From sequence record PQ451753.1: a DNA stretch of 64,000 nucleotides; one strand, written 5' to 3'. How positions within the stretch are numbered: position 1 is the stretch's first letter; each line of letters starts with the position of its first letter. Positions 3,090-43,153 of the stretch are shown in pieces. The notes under the pieces are model-generated. The model worked only from the letters and a program-made list of their open reading frames with translations, was not told the DNA's origin and ran no database searches. A program made the translations under genes and the position numbers.

Positions 3090-3185
3090 GTTCAAAGGGG
3101 GAATACGGCAGCGTTGGATCTTTTATTCTTCGCTGCCGTACTGTAAAAAATTATTGTAGATCAATTGTTTATGCAGGAGGTATTC

Positions 3186-3579: not shown

Positions 3580-4332
3580 ATGAAAACTTTATTTGATAAA
3601 ATATCTGCAATCGTAGCCGAGCATTCTGAATACAAAGTACTTGATAAAAATGATGTAGCGAAAACTATATCGGATGACTTTGGTATGCTGCCGTTGTATG
3701 TTGAAAAGGACGGTGAGGTTTACTACAGTGTCATTTGCTACAGTGAGAGTTATCAGAGGTTTAACATTCCTGGAAGTGTTATGTCGAACTTACTTGGAGA
3801 TATGGGTAAGCCTGTTAACTACTGTGGTTCTATTTATGTCAATGACATTTATAGTCATATGGACGACGATAGCGTTCAGCAAATACTTGGGAGTGCTGAG
3901 TGCGTTTTAATACAAACCTTTGATGCTGATAAAGAGTTTAGTGAACGTACTATTCTAAATAAGCGCGCTTGGGGTGTTCGATTCGGGCACGAAATGTTCC
4001 AATTTGAATTGACTACAGATCCAACTTCACTTCTAGTTAGTAAGAGAAAATTACTAACGGGCATGTTCGAGATAAATAAAGATCTGGGTTCTATTGTTAT
4101 TACCGAGATGGAAGAATTTGGCGAAATATGTCCTACATTAACGATTGACTTAATTAAGAGATTAAGCGACGCGTGGAGTGGTGGGAAAGTATCAATTGAA
4201 TATACTAGCATTGGCATCATGCAGGTTTATGCCTCTAGCGTAATTAAATGGCAAGAGCAACACAAAGAGTTCAGTGCGGTTGAAGTTATCATTGCTGATG
4301 ATTACACTAAATATCTAACAATTACACTTTAA
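3580..4332 (+). CDS. Hypothetical early protein
   Basis: 250-aa ORF, GGGAGAT RBS, follows the promoter motif. Confidence 0.8.
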   Translation: MKTLFDKISAIVAEHSEYKVLDKNDVAKTISDDFGMLPLYVEKDGEVYYSVICYSESYQRFNIPGSVMSNLLGDMGKPVNYCGSIYVNDIYSHMDDDSVQQILGSAECVLIQTFDADKEFSERTILNKRAWGVRFGHEMFQFELTTDPTSLLVSKRKLLTGMFEINKDLGSIVITEMEEFGEICPTLTIDLIKRLSDAWSGGKVSIEYTSIGIMQVYASSVIKWQEQHKEFSAVEVIIADDYTKYLTITL

Positions 4333-4347
4333 TGGGAGATAAAAAAA

Positions 4348-4908
4348 ATGAACAAAGTAACTTTAGAAATTCGCGAAGGTAAACTACGTCCAATCTACAA
4401 CGGTGAAATCGTTGACCAACGTCACAACCTACTATTCGAATTGGATATCGCGTTAGGTAACCTTCCACCATCACCATGTCGCGGTGACGATGGTACAATC
4501 AATATTGAAGATGCAGTAGGCTACGTATTCATCAACATTGAAGATCGCCGTCAACGTTGTATGGCACACCAAGCAGAGTACCGTGAGGTATTGCAGCAAC
4601 TTAAAGCTGAAGTACTTAAGTTCTACCACGAGTACAAAACTGACCCAACTGAATACCACTTGGATTACATGTTGGAGGCAGCTAAACGTAATGGCGTTAA
4701 ATCAGTCTACCTTGACATGTTCTACGAAGGTAAGATATCACGTAACGATTTGAAAACTTGTTTCCTACGTGGTTCTTGTTCAACAATCGATCCGTCAATC
4801 TTCAGCGACCCATCACCTAAAGGCTTTGCAGTACCACCTGCACCGGAAGCGCCAGCTGAGCCTGAATGTCAAACCTCTCACGAAAACTACGGCAAGGAGT
4901 CTAAGTAA
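4348..4908 (+). CDS. Hypothetical protein with Pro/Glu-rich C-terminus
   Basis: 186-aa ORF, GGGAGAT RBS. Confidence 0.8.
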   Translation: MNKVTLEIREGKLRPIYNGEIVDQRHNLLFELDIALGNLPPSPCRGDDGTINIEDAVGYVFINIEDRRQRCMAHQAEYREVLQQLKAEVLKFYHEYKTDPTEYHLDYMLEAAKRNGVKSVYLDMFYEGKISRNDLKTCFLRGSCSTIDPSIFSDPSPKGFAVPPAPEAPAEPECQTSHENYGKESK

Positions 4909-9323: not shown

Positions 9324-9611
9324 ATGAAATATTTCAACCTCACCAGCGTCCCTGTAAGCGGCTATGAGATGGTTGCAGGTTTACCTAATGAACTAGGTGA
9401 CCGATTAACCGAATACCTCTCACGTGGCTTTGAGAAGGATGCTGTGAGCCTTTCAGTATTGATGGACAACGCAGGTATCAAAGGTTTTATCATTGACCCT
9501 ATTCATACGCCAGATACAACCAAACATATCTTACGTAAAGTAAGCCAACTACGCGGCAGCTGCGCAGCATTCTCAGTGAGTGCTGGTCAGTTGGTTCCCG
9601 CAACCCAGTAA
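9324..9611 (+). CDS. Hypothetical protein
   Basis: 95 aa, AGGAG RBS. Confidence 0.7.
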   Translation: MKYFNLTSVPVSGYEMVAGLPNELGDRLTEYLSRGFEKDAVSLSVLMDNAGIKGFIIDPIHTPDTTKHILRKVSQLRGSCAAFSVSAGQLVPATQ

Positions 9612-9627
9612 CGTGAGTGGTACTTTT

Positions 9628-9652
9628 GGGGGTCTTCGGACCCTCTTTTTTT
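9628..9652 (+). terminator. Intrinsic terminator
   Basis: GGGGGTC-TTCG-GACCCTC with C(UUCG)G loop and T7 tract. Confidence 0.85.
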
Positions 9653-9670
9653 GTGTCGGCAAATAAAACT

Positions 9671-10030
9671 ACAGGCGATGCTAGGAATTAACCTAGCAAC
9701 CTGTCGGACATATAATACCCTACTAAGGCAAATAAAAAAGGGGTTGTCGGTGAGTTTCCCCACCGACGATGCCAGACAACGAGTTACAAAATCAACCATA
9801 TGGAGAGCATGGCGTGCGGAGTGGGCTGCTGTTCGGTCAACCCACTCCACGGGACAAACGCCTCGTCTACATCACGTTAGGACCCACGTTTGAAACATAA
9901 CCGATAATCATAGGAGGTGCAGCGTTAACAGTTGGCTAAGTCACTGTACTGCAATATCGGATAGGCGATTGTCGTAAGGAATCTTTGGCTGGTTCGAACA
10001 GTCCCTTACAGAAGATATGACATTCAGTAA
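9671..10030. ncRNA. Candidate structured non-coding RNA (strand unresolved, minus slightly favoured)
   Basis: At least 6 hand-verified helices in an intergenic region; GAAA tetraloop hairpin plus U-tract on minus; T-loop-like hairpin; unpaired SD/anti-SD segment. Confidence 0.55.
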
Positions 10031-10039
10031 AAAATTACT

Positions 10040-11182
10040 TTATGTGGCTTGCTTCAATGATTGACGTGCTAGCATATTGACCGCAATAAGTGTGCGTACT
10101 AGTGATGCGCTGATGGCTGACTCAACCGAAACTGCGTTCTTAATGTCTTGCTTCAATTGTTTCACATTACCACGACCTTCCGCTTCAAACTTCGCTAGCT
10201 TATCTTGAGCTTTCTTAACTGAGGCTTGTTCTTTGTTGAACTTGTACGAGATATCGCTGGTTACCTCAACTAGCGATCGTAATGCAGGCATCAGTTTATT
10301 AGTATCGCTTGGAGTTAGCGTGATCGTATCAGATGTCTTCTCAACTAAAGGTGCTGCCCAACCCGTCTTGCGTGTACCCGTTGGAGTAATCGCAGTTGCT
10401 ATGTAAATGTTACCCGGCAATGCTTTAACCTGAGCGCGACTGTCTTTCTTAATAATGAGCGGCATGGCTTGTTGGATAGCTTGGTCAGCGACTCCACTAA
10501 TTGCAATACGTTCAAGCTTTGCAGTTGCCTCATCCCAGTTGTAAGTATCAAGCATGTAACCTTTAGCTGGATTGATTACAGCATAAAAGGCATCGGCTGC
10601 GTTAGTGATGTCACGACCGTTCTTACCAAGATCGAGGTGACGGGCAATATCAAACTTACTTGCAATATACAAGTAGCTGTATTCCATCTTACGCTTCAGT
10701 TCAAACGGGTGACCTGCGGCGTACTCCAGGTAATCTGCTTCGTTCTTCTCTAGCCACTTACGAGATTGTTCTGATATGTTGAACATCTTCTTAAATGACT
10801 TCCACATACCGCTGAGTTTCTCAGAGAACCAATTACCGATGTTACTCATCAGTCCTTCCATTGCAATATCAACTTCTTTGATAAAAGCAGTACGGGGACA
10901 AGAGGCGGATTCAAGACCTACAGATTCGGATAGGAACCAACGTGCTTTAATGTCATTAACGGCATAAAGCATACCAGTGTAATCTAGGTGTGATTCAGAC
11001 ACTTGTTCCATGGCGATCTTTTTCAGGTTGTCAAGTGTTTCTAAATCGTTAAACAGTTGTTCACCGTCGGCGTCTAAGGTTTGTTGTTGTTCGAATAAAC
11101 ACAATGCTTCCATTGCGACAGTTGTCATCTCATCGTGATCGTAGCCCCCGCCATCTGCATCGATCCATTTTTTAGTTTGCAT
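10040..11182 (-). CDS. Internal head protein (phiKZ gp93-97-like family)
   Basis: AME, GLE and AME sites in an acidic propeptide, followed by an amphipathic helix; GGGAGG RBS. Confidence 0.7.
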   Translation of the reverse strand: MQTKKWIDADGGGYDHDEMTTVAMEALCLFEQQQTLDADGEQLFNDLETLDNLKKIAMEQVSESHLDYTGMLYAVNDIKARWFLSESVGLESASCPRTAFIKEVDIAMEGLMSNIGNWFSEKLSGMWKSFKKMFNISEQSRKWLEKNEADYLEYAAGHPFELKRKMEYSYLYIASKFDIARHLDLGKNGRDITNAADAFYAVINPAKGYMLDTYNWDEATAKLERIAISGVADQAIQQAMPLIIKKDSRAQVKALPGNIYIATAITPTGTRKTGWAAPLVEKTSDTITLTPSDTNKLMPALRSLVEVTSDISYKFNKEQASVKKAQDKLAKFEAEGRGNVKQLKQDIKNAVSVESAISASLVRTLIAVNMLARQSLKQAT

Positions 11183-11189
11183 ACGAAAT

Positions 11190-12290
11190 CCTCCCTAGGG
11201 TTTATGCATACTATTCGATATTTCCCCCTTTAAGGTCCCCTCTTTCCTTTCCTTTTCTCTTTCCTTTTTCCCCTCTTTGGAAACACCCCTTTTACCTATC
11301 TCTTATCCTATCCTAACTCCCCCCTAAATCCCCCTTTTAGCGTCACTCCAGTCGCTTCGCTCCCAAGGAGTTCCTTGAATGCTGACATTAGATTAATGTC
11401 TCTATATTTTTTTACTGTACAAAAAGTGAACAGTTTTAAATTGAGTATAAAGTTTAAGAAAAATTTTAAGGTTTAATTAATCTAAATATAAAAGTATGTT
11501 TAATAGAAATAGAACTATTGATCCAAGAGATTGACTTGTTTCTCCGAGAGATTGTATGGGCGTGCGCCGCCCGACTCGTATAAGGAGATAAGTGATGATA
11601 CTGAAGTTTATAGCGATAGATGAAATCAATGCATTAAGGATGGCTAAGCAGCTGTTGCAGCGCGGCAGGAAAGTTGCTGTCTATAAGAGAATGGTGGTGT
11701 CTGAAATACAAGACAGTGAGAACGCATTCTTGCAATGCAAATACCGTGCGTATACGGAAACGATAACACCATGGGATTGGCGTTACTTTGAATCGAACAA
11801 TTTAATTTTTTGATCTAAATTAAGTGTTTTTCTAAGGTTAATGTTTTTTTCTACGGTTATACTCCTATTATATGTCTTACACAGCTTTTAGCTAGTGTGA
11901 GATCTAGAGGACAGGGCGAAGCCCTGCGTCGAAGGAAGACGGACGGAGACCGACCGGGGGCGGGAGACGACCGGAGGTAGAGATTCGAGGGAGCCCGGAG
12001 AGGCTCCCAGAGAAGTAGATAGATAAAGATAGATAAAAGAGAATAGAATAGGGAGAGAATCCAGGATGGATGGAAAGAAATGTGGAGCTTTAAAAAGTTT
12101 AGGATAAACTAGACTTTAAATAATCCTTTTTTTATTTGTTAAGGTTAAGTTATGAAATTAAATCTAATTTTAAAAAGTTTATTGATCGGCATTCCCGGAT
12201 TGAGTCCTTTGCCGCCCGCGCCACTGGTTACTTTTTATACAGAGGTGCATAGTGTACATAACTCGTAAATTTTTCTTTAAAGGCTTTTAG
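11190..12290. other. Candidate replication-origin / control region
   Basis: Mostly non-coding 1.1 kb: polypyrimidine tract left, polypurine tract right, AT-rich core, opposed GCGAAGC motifs, short direct repeats. Confidence 0.45.
11592..11813 (+). CDS. Small hypothetical protein
   Basis: AAGGAGAT RBS, 73 aa. Confidence 0.5.
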   Translation: MMILKFIAIDEINALRMAKQLLQRGRKVAVYKRMVVSEIQDSENAFLQCKYRAYTETITPWDWRYFESNNLIF

Positions 12291-12884
12291 ATGACTAAGA
12301 CACTAATCGCGCTGGATATAGATGAAACACTCAATTCGATGTTAGACCATAAACTATTATGCGATGCTGATGACGAAGGTGGTGATGAACAACTATACCC
12401 TGCTCAGTTTGAAGGCATACTTAAGTTTTGTAATATAACGAATGGTGGAAATCGTTCTGAGTATGACTTAGGGATGTATGTAAATGTTGAACAGTTAAAA
12501 GCGTTCAATGAAATACGAGAAGAGTTTGATGCGGATGTCTTAGGGACGTCTTCATGGTTCTGCGGTGGAAGGGATGACAGAAAGGTAGCTGGCTTTCTTG
12601 ATATACCAGATGAGAAGTTTATTGGTTCGGGCGATACTGGTGGTTCAGTAGGGCGTTGTAAGTCAGTTGCTGAAGCGGTATTGAAGGGTGGTTATAATCG
12701 CTTGATTGTGTTAGATGACCAGTACTTTGGTTGGGAGTTGTTTGGATTAGATGTTCATCGTCCTAACATCACTGGAGCAGAAGCGTTTAATAGTGAGTGT
12801 CAACAACAAGCGCGAGAGATTCAATCAATTGAAATAGACCATGTGGAGTTAGCGCGACTACTGGAAGCTTACAGGCGTAAGTAA
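12291..12884 (+). CDS. HAD-superfamily phosphatase-like protein (RNA-repair-type HAD family)
   Basis: Motif I LDIDETLN, motif II SSW, motif IV LIVLDD. Confidence 0.7.
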   Translation: MTKTLIALDIDETLNSMLDHKLLCDADDEGGDEQLYPAQFEGILKFCNITNGGNRSEYDLGMYVNVEQLKAFNEIREEFDADVLGTSSWFCGGRDDRKVAGFLDIPDEKFIGSGDTGGSVGRCKSVAEAVLKGGYNRLIVLDDQYFGWELFGLDVHRPNITGAEAFNSECQQQAREIQSIEIDHVELARLLEAYRRK

Positions 12885-43107: not shown

Positions 43108-43113
43108 GCGGCA

Positions 43114-43153
43114 AATAAAAAGGAGGGCAAATGCCCTCCTCTTATTTTTTTTT
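43114..43153. terminator. Bidirectional terminator
   Basis: AGGAGGGCA-AA-TGCCCTCCT flanked by A- and T-tracts. Confidence 0.85.

Follow-up and report, generated by a model that had tools for sequence, protein, structure and literature searches.

The stretch of DNA analysed in the current study (64,000 nucleotides (nt), referred to below as the window) is a 100% match to the final 64 kb of the genome of Vibrio phage pVp-JHP1101 (PQ451753, 230 kb). This phage and its closest relative, pVa-21, are phiKZ-like jumbo phages with genes for multisubunit RNA polymerases (PMC6472347, PMC12685585). Identity between the two (87%) extends as far as window position ~10043 and the sequences are divergent beyond it. 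The gap that ends at this point is flanked by convergent genes, both without known function, and holds a unit for which an original prediction had proposed an undescribed structured non-coding RNA (ncRNA) of a jumbo phage. That proposal was borne out: the unit is a real, previously undescribed structured RNA gene. The features of the locus are given in table 1.

The conserved unit and its boundaries

Relatives of the unit were found by way of the proteins encoded beside it (the 95-amino acid (aa) protein, later the 380-aa protein) in a large protein collection, after which the contigs were fetched; the sample comprised GenBank and metagenomes. Seven lineages were recovered, namely A (the window, L022 and L023), B (pVa-21 and L045), C (L003-L012, L027, L028-30 and L041), D (L016/L017), D2 (L021), E (L018-20, partial) and F (L038-L040 and the partial L042), the last being the most distant. 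Searches of 50,697 phage records with blastn and tblastn found pVp-JHP1101 and pVa-21 only. Exact-pattern scans of IMG/VR, JGI metagenomes and GTDB genomes gave nothing, or chance matches in G+C-rich bacterial coding DNA (L026, L032), and a protein-anchored scan of IMG/VR gave nothing either. A covariance model (R1) built on helices P2-P7 scored 94.9 bits with the held-out L018 and 118 bits with L041, and across the 230-kb genome it found a single copy of the RNA. The same model did not match L038. Its best match in the gap of Erwinia phage phiEaH2 that is syntenic with the locus was not significant (8.5 bits, E 0.22) and lay at a place that does not correspond. As far as these searches reach, the RNA is confined to one clade of Vibrio jumbo phages.

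In all lineages homology sets in at the box GTAWTTTTTTAC(T/C/G)G (window 10038-10025, minus strand; onset at about 10038-10040). The position of this box is constant whatever adjoins it upstream, be it the stop codon of the 380-aa gene, other non-coding DNA or a variant gene, and the box persists in every lineage, including the distant L038 (GTATTTTTTTACG). At the other end homology stops, again in all lineages, at a hairpin (P9) with UUUUUUAUUUGCC behind it (window 9767-9727).

The genome has 22 copies of the tail TTTTATTTG where 4.3 would be expected, and 20 of them lie directly 3′ of a G+C-rich hairpin, some at the ends of genes such as the one that stops at window 43150. This enrichment, together with the hairpins that the tail follows, marks it as the phage's own terminator signature, which at the RNA is read on the minus strand. 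More generally, an unusual tail of fixed sequence, TTTT(T)ATTTG(Y), is common to the intrinsic terminators of the phage, examples being 43109-43150 (-), 13950 (+) and 12131-12144 (+). P9 was originally described as a GNRA-capped 3′ hairpin. The GAAA loop is present in the window, but the cap varies by lineage (GAAA, GUAA, GUAAAA or UUUC) and is not a defining feature. It was also observed that in L045 (3585-4020) the P9 stem is unchanged while its loop is the reverse complement (UUUC for GAAA), as if inverted.

Downstream of P9 lies an optional module of 69 nt, flanked by the direct repeat GGCAAATAAAA (9658-68 and 9727-37) and missing from D (L016/L017), D2 (L021), E (L018-L020) and L028-L030. 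Like P9, it consists of a G+C-rich hairpin and a U-rich tract of a kind found repeatedly where transcription units end; its tail belongs to the 22 counted above, and we read it as a probable tandem back-up terminator. The helix 9671-75/9700-04 with 9680-85/9692-97, formerly counted as part of the RNA, is real but falls inside this dispensable module. So does the TTAACC-17-TATAAT sequence that had been suggested as a plus-strand promoter. Since its -10 element reads TAAGAT in clade C, the sigma-70-like promoter reading fails.

Table 1. Positions of the unit, its structural elements and the flanking features in the window (structural elements are given on the minus strand).
Feature	Position	Strand	Remarks
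Whole conserved unit (5′ box, ~290-nt P1-P9 RNA, terminator tail)	9727..10040	-	Homology limits shared by all lineages
Conserved 5′ box GTAATTTTTTACTG, candidate promoter	10025..10038	-	Conservation; putative promoter role
P1, 8 bp, 20-nt loop	10002-09 / 9974-81	-	3/8 pairs changed on both sides; 100% of cells paired
First 7 nt of P1 loop, CUGUUCG (predicted kissing strand 1)	9995..10001	-	Pairs with 9829-9835
P2, long-range, closes domain 9853..9973	9964-73 / 9853-62	-	5 pairs changed on both sides
P3	9955-61 / 9900-06	-	5 pairs changed on both sides
P4	9948-53 / 9918-23	-	5 pairs changed on both sides
P5, loop GACUUAGCCA (9933-42)	9943-47 / 9928-32	-	
Junction CCUCCUAUGAU	9907-17	-	
P6 arm (9865-9896)	9886-96 / 9865-77	-	
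P6 loop GGGUCCUA, inside invariant block CGUGGGUCCUAACG	9878..9885	-	Invariant in 9/9 aligned sequences
P7, 13-bp hairpin, 9-nt loop ACCGAACAG (9829-9837)	9838-50 / 9816-28	-	5 pairs changed on both sides; many minus-strand G-U
P7 loop bases CGAACAG (predicted kissing strand 2)	9829-9835	-	Pairs with 9995-10001
P8, variable hairpin, pyrimidine-rich loop GCUCUCCAU	9809-13 / 9795-99	-	4 pairs changed on both sides
Conserved single-stranded stretch UCGUUGUCUGGCAUC	9768..9782	-	
P9 hairpin (9759-67/9746-54, GAAA loop) and tail CCCCUUUUUUAUUUGCC; intrinsic terminator, predicted RNA 3′ end	9727..9767	-	3 pairs changed on both sides
Optional 69-nt module: second hairpin 9671-9704 and tail UUUUAUUUGCCG (9657-9668)	9657..9726	-	Read as tandem back-up terminator
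Intrinsic terminator of convergent operon	9628..9653	+	Terminator scan; kept in pVa-21 with compensatory changes
95-aa open reading frame (ORF), last of plus-strand operon	9324-9611	+	
380-aa ORF, adjoins RNA unit upstream	10040..11182	-	Accessory neighbour outside the RNA
Annotated coding sequence (CDS) pVpJHP1101_208, 43 aa, antisense to RNA	9769..9900	+	GenBank annotation

The consensus fold and the loop-loop contact

Nine distinct sequences were aligned by hand (alignment A4, with N in place of gaps), because MAFFT misaligns the variable arms. In this alignment 94.9% of 648 cells were paired, compared with 84.5 ± 0.8% in shuffles, the cells not being independent because they derive from only about seven lineages of one phage clade. 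Changes on both sides that left the pairing intact were found in 31 of the 79 pairs, a number reached by none of 500 shuffles (17.7 ± 2.7), and slid controls gave 2-10. RNAalifold, applied to A4, independently predicted P1-P9 with 28 compensatory pairs. The fold consists of P1, a domain closed by P2 from which two arms (P3-P4-P5 and P6) project, P7, P8 and the terminator hairpin P9. Helices P1-P9 persist through many compensatory changes, and the boundaries of the unit are the same in every relative.

Folding statistics agreed with this picture. The segment 9655-10040 folded better than its dinucleotide shuffles on both strands (z -3.46 on the minus strand and -2.61 on the plus strand), and when single sequences of lineages A, C and D and of L038 were folded by minimum free energy (MFE), a common architecture resulted, the P2 domain included. 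The z-scores were -2.85 for the core of the window, -4.10 for L016 and -4.30 for L038. Covariation among homologues and a folding energy better than that of dinucleotide shuffles had both been proposed as checks on the original prediction, and the results speak for it in each case.

The strand, which had been left open, could now be assigned. The cells of the consensus helices comprise 545 Watson-Crick, 70 G-U, 12 A-C-type and 21 other combinations, and the paired fraction is 86% if the helices are read on the plus strand instead of the minus strand. This asymmetry (70 G-U against 12 A-C) and the two minus-strand terminators of the phage's own type place the RNA on the minus strand. Taken as a whole, the unit is discrete, independent of its flanks and present in a single copy, it ends in genuine terminators, and selection maintains its RNA structure on the minus strand.

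All helices listed in the original prediction exist. Six of them, 9746-54/9759-67, 9816-28/9838-50, 9901-06/9955-60, 9918-22/9949-53, 9928-32/9943-47 and 9974-79/10004-09, correspond to P9, P7, P3, P4, P5 and P1, respectively, and are conserved and covarying across the relatives. Two others are present in the phage of the window but go no further: 9811-15/9858-62 is specific to this phage and competes with the conserved P2, and 9987-91/9999-10003 has no counterpart in clades C, D and F. P2 itself and the P6 arm had been missed.

The loop region of P6 is the most conserved part of the RNA, and its closing stem changes from ACGU/ACGU to GCGU/ACGC in clade D. The P8 loop carries a CUCC-like motif in most lineages. 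Within the single-stranded stretch between P8 and P9, UCGUUGUCU is identical in 8 of the 9 sequences, L038 retaining GUCUGG; no pairing partner was found for this stretch (9768-82). Two further structural candidates were considered. A helix that pairs the 5′ leader with the UGGCAU stretch and closes the MFE structure was rejected as not conserved, and a GAAA-tetraloop/11-nt receptor interaction was rejected because the receptor halves are split between helices and the loop varies among lineages.

The start of the P1 loop is complementary to the P7 loop in every lineage (7 bp, 100% paired), which points to a covarying kissing contact between the two loops. The pair is CUGUUCG/CGAACAG in lineages A, B, D and D2. 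Clade C has CUGUUCA/UGAACAG, a compensatory change from G-C to A-U, and L023 and L045 have CUGUUCG/CGAGCAG with a U-G wobble. Lineage F (L038) has CCGUCUCAU/AUGAGACGG, in which 9 of 9 bases pair, the entire P7 loop is involved, and the two strands have been replaced together at the two corresponding places; by our own arithmetic, for lineage F alone, the chance of such a pairing at a fixed place is ~4^-9. To judge from these sequences, the contact would either draw the 5′ hairpin onto P7 or join two molecules.

The predicted contact also accounts for the invariance of CUGUUC among the close relatives, in which its T-loop-like context varies. The P1 loop of the window and of pVa-21 reads CUG-UUCGAAC-CAG, which fits the T-loop consensus (G-UUCRANY-C), and from the loop of the window it had been suggested that the RNA might mimic the elbow of a transfer RNA (tRNA). 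The G-UUCGAAC-C T-loop is restricted to lineages A and B. Clade D has CUGUUCGAACAG, with one base fewer, clade C has CUGUUCAUCGUCGAG, and the loop of L038 is unrelated, so that the elbow mimic was abandoned.

The divergent lineage F, which provides an independent test of the fold, retains the plan of the unit. In L038 the 5′ box lies 3-8 nt past the stop codon of its 380-aa homologue, and the terminator tail is the same as that of the window and follows a GUAA-capped hairpin of 10 bp. P1 is found at the corresponding place as GUAGAGAA/UUCUCUAC (paired strands also given as UGUAGAGAA/UUCUCUACA), and the long-range P2, GCUAUUGCU/AGCAGUAGU, closes the P3-P4 arm and the P6 arm, the latter reading ACGU-CUAUCCU-ACGU. 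P7 has 8 bp and a 9-nt loop, the P8 loop is GUUCUCCG, and GUCUGG is followed by P9. With L038 threaded onto the helices of the family, 63 of 70 cells were paired and 32 differed from the window on both sides. L038 folds into the architecture of the family, though it lies beyond recognition by the covariance model.

Neighbouring genes and the gene-free island

The 380-aa ORF upstream of the RNA is carried by the lineage of the window, L016/L017, L028-30, L041, L045 and L038. It is missing from pVa-21 and most of clade C, though the intergenic RNA sequence persists there. Its homologues are 51-98% identical and their presence is patchy across lineages, the gene-free island being a hotspot for accessory genes; the corresponding gap of the clade C phage L003 has a GIY-YIG-like ORF (L003 6074-6817, a faint Pfam match). 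The 380-aa ORF had no matches in Pfam, PHROG, NCBIfam or PDB, and searches of family and structure databases with the proteins neighbouring the unit gave no lead to function.

The motif [AT]TTTTTTAC[ATC]G, which describes the 5′ box, has four copies in the 230-kb genome, each in a non-coding gap. The three copies other than that of the RNA (window 3141-3154 (-) and 11404-11417 (+), and genome record 5949 (-)) are each followed by a hairpin, which in the first case is TACGGCAGCG..CGCTGCCGTA at window 3139-3095, and judging by their sequence they may start further small transcripts. The copy at 11404 points away from the box of the RNA, so that the two form a divergent pair in phages without the 380-aa gene. 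A search of the window for an over-represented AT-rich promoter k-mer gave no clear motif.

The island contains a second candidate ncRNA at window 11865-12144 (+), a very conserved purine-rich block of ~280 nt with hairpins such as CAGGGC-GAA-GCCCUG and GGGAGCC..GGCUCCC, which ends in a hairpin and TTTTTTTATTTGTT, the terminator tail of the phage. In L022 the sequence of one of its hairpins is exchanged for another in which pairing is preserved (3 compensatory pairs). Comparison of this candidate with Rfam gave noise only (IMES-1, 14.8 bits). About 500 nt upstream of the purine-rich block lies a C/T-rich tract of variable length (11225-11340 (+)), and the tract and the block (11850-12100 (+)) can form a long imperfect duplex of -82.6 kcal/mol, a value without shuffle control; this could be either a long-range RNA stem or DNA prone to triplex or R-loop formation. 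Pairing between the RNA unit and the neighbouring purine-rich RNA was no better than in shuffles.

The island also holds an AT-rich block adjoining the G+C-rich palindrome GGGCGTGCGCCGCCC (window 11430-11580). A syntenic gene-free gap of ~1.1 kb in phiEaH2 has an AT-rich block (L037 3950-4070) with repeated ATCTAAAGATATTAATA and GC palindromes on either side, and its flank (4120-4470) is strongly structured (z -4.15), without homology by the covariance model. The AT-rich block and palindromes may be an origin-like element whose position is conserved across genera; GC skew gave no signal.

The window, L023 and pVa-21 share an ORF of 73 aa (11592-11813 (+)) with a good Shine-Dalgarno sequence, AAGGAG. 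Clade C lacks it in a clean absence, with the flanking non-coding blocks joined. The island is bordered by a gene for a 197-aa protein (12291-12884 (+)). This protein has a sub-threshold match (E 0.0012; 19.7 bits, cut-off 27.5) to Pfam HAD_SAK_2, a HAD domain found in RNA-repair proteins of the 'Swiss Army Knife' type; tblastn found distant relatives of it in Aeromonas phages.

Relation to known RNAs and possible role

The whole window was compared with Rfam 15 (4227 models), a check that had been suggested at the outset, and had no matches at gathering thresholds. At E up to 10, the region 9400-10300 gave only five noise matches of 11-16 bits, against thresholds of 37-80. ARAGORN found no genes for tRNA or transfer-messenger RNA (tmRNA) in the 64 kb, in line with the original statement that the RNA has no cloverleaf. 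A group I intron was looked for in Rfam without a match, and the unit does not interrupt a gene, being bordered by a terminator at one end and at the other by a stop codon or non-coding DNA.

GOLLD, ROOL, OLE and raiA are, like the present RNA, multi-helix RNAs defined by covariation whose biochemical function is unknown, and some are borne by phages. Cryo-electron microscopy has shown that GOLLD, ROOL and OLE assemble through RNA-RNA contacts that include kissing loops (PMC12286853). Unlike them, the present RNA is found in a single clade of marine Vibrio jumbo phages, has no match to an Rfam model, and forms a unit of ~290-315 nt, compared with >500 nt for GOLLD, ROOL and OLE. The phi29 pRNA is also a phage-encoded, stand-alone structured RNA with two complementary, covarying loops. 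There is, however, no sequence or model match to it, pVp-JHP1101 has a classical large terminase, and the locus lies away from the genome end. In the absence of model matches, the RNA is not a member of the GOLLD, ROOL, OLE, raiA or phi29 pRNA families.

Small RNAs of the giant Pseudomonas phages 201phi2-1 and phiKZ, detected by ONT-cappable-seq, are <250 nt and mostly derived from 5′ untranslated regions (UTRs), for example upstream of a tail gene (PMC11512511). They resemble the Vibrio unit in being short units of chimallivirus-type genomes that start near a terminator, some of them being intergenic (PMC11512511), whereas the Vibrio unit is larger, lies between convergent units and has a tertiary structure supported by covariation. 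Its location also differs from that of the sRNA005/sRNA-gp182 type, which occupies the 5′ UTR of a conserved tail-protein gene (PMC11512511). The T-loop consensus in the P1 loops of the window and pVa-21 recalls the mimics in tmRNA and the Y RNA-like YrlA; in contrast to these, the T-loop does not extend to clades C, D and F, there is no acceptor or anticodon mimic, and the conserved bases would serve the kissing contact.

The best explanation of these results, to which we assign a probability of about 0.6, is that 9727-10040 is a stand-alone minus-strand gene, with a putative promoter box, for an ncRNA of ~290 nt that acts in trans as a folded particle. The 5′ box would be its promoter, probably read by an RNA polymerase that the phage itself encodes. 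Early promoters of giant phages are AT-rich boxes of ~10 nt near -10, sometimes with few copies per genome (PMC7598289, PMC11512511). The RNA would act as a compact folded particle, and not as a simple antisense RNA or cis element, and the invariant unpaired GGGUCCUA, UAGCCA, C-CUCCU and UCGUUGUCUGG would be presented to a protein or RNA partner during infection. A protein scaffold, as suggested in the original prediction, is a possible role. Action in trans is supported by the fact that the upstream 1.1-kb gene and the downstream 69-nt module come and go while the unit is unchanged, and by the presence of only one copy of the RNA in the genome.

Several points weigh against this explanation. 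Alignment A4 was fitted to the structure by eye and represents about seven related lineages of one phage clade, and the folding z-score of clade C is weak (L003, -1.78). The four copies of the box compare with ~1.6 expected genome-wide, which by itself is not significant, and its putative promoter role is argued from conservation and analogy. The 5′ end, the 3′ end and the abundance of the RNA are predictions made from sequence. The trans-acting role is likewise conjectural, and sites complementary to the conserved loops occurred within the window at chance level.

More tentatively, and with low probability, the RNA could be the founding member of a new compact class of 'ornate' phage RNAs that has its own biochemical role. 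The kissing contact would then form between molecules to give dimers or rings, as in pRNA, ROOL and GOLLD, or the RNA would be the core of a ribonucleoprotein in a jumbo phage of the nucleus-forming type. Such an oligomer is conceivable, since 'ornate' RNAs can assemble through intermolecular contacts (PMC12286853).

A regulatory RNA that acts by base pairing is doubtful. Here the anti-Shine-Dalgarno-like C-CUCCU and the CUCUCC of the P8 loop would pair with AGGAG ribosome-binding sites on mRNAs of the phage or the host and block their translation, the fold serving for stability. CUCCU is indeed unpaired in the junction across the close family, the P8 loop has its CUCC-like motif even in L038, and the motif in the P4/P3 junction of the window, CACCUCCU, is identical to the 3′ tail of 16S rRNA. 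On the other hand, the junction of L038 is only UU and lacks the motif, a seed of 5 nt has no specificity, and the window is not enriched in complementary sites. Nine conserved helices and a tertiary contact exceed by far what a seed-presenting small RNA needs, and structure conserved to this extent speaks against a plain antisense RNA as well as against mere punctuation.

Large conserved RNAs of bacteria and phages are often catalytic or form the cores of ribonucleoproteins, and the complex conserved architecture, the tertiary contact and the strictly invariant unpaired nucleotides could belong to a ribozyme or self-processing RNA, in which the compact fold and invariant internal loops would form a catalytic core for, e.g., self-cleavage or ligation. 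Such a role is unlikely, as no self-cleaving or intron family of Rfam matched even at E up to 10, and the single copy has neither flanking exons nor a repeated genomic context.

Slightly less likely again is that the unit is punctuation only, i.e. tandem terminators, stability hairpins or the 3′ UTR of the 380-aa gene without an RNA function of its own. P9 and the optional module are real terminators, and in several lineages a gene ends 3-8 nt ahead of the unit. The terminators, however, account for the last 40-110 nt only, the unit is intact in pVa-21 and clade C without the upstream gene, and P1-P8, the long-range helix and the loop-loop contact covary.

An element acting as DNA (a replication origin, packaging site or recombination site) with incidental inverted repeats is very improbable. 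The unit does lie at the edge of a gene-free island of ~1.4 kb with an AT-rich block and polypyrimidine and polypurine tracts, and the syntenic island of phiEaH2 has AT-rich iteron-like repeats. The 70:12 asymmetry, however, is a mark of single-stranded RNA and not of duplex or cruciform DNA, and the long-range helix and loop-loop pairing would make no sense for DNA. Moreover, an insertion of 1.1 kb between the unit and the AT-rich block is tolerated, and GC skew merely tracks gene orientation.

A decayed or small protein gene can practically be dismissed: ORFs of 43-87 aa overlap the region, one of them (the 43-aa CDS 9769-9900) being annotated in GenBank and an 87-aa ORF lying on the minus strand, but substitutions are pairwise-compensatory without periodicity at third codon positions, indels are not multiples of three, and no stop-free frame is held in position across lineages. 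In the original prediction the overlapping short ORFs had been noted to lack a ribosome-binding site, and none is conserved. As the ATG of pVpJHP1101_208 is lost in clade C (CCCAATAGAC) and its middle part in pVa-21 is unalignable or has indels, this CDS is probably a spurious gene call.

The analysis corrects the GenBank annotation at CDS _208 and reveals a terminator signature and an adjoining gene-free 'RNA island'; the fixed terminator tail helps to annotate transcription units in this phage group. The predicted ends, the consensus structure, the invariant loops and the covarying kissing contact make the RNA directly testable. To our knowledge, jumbo and nucleus-forming phages have yielded very few structured RNAs, none of them with an established function. 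That a non-coding unit of ~300 nt in a tightly packed phage genome has kept its fold despite the drift of its sequence indicates strong selection as a folded RNA.

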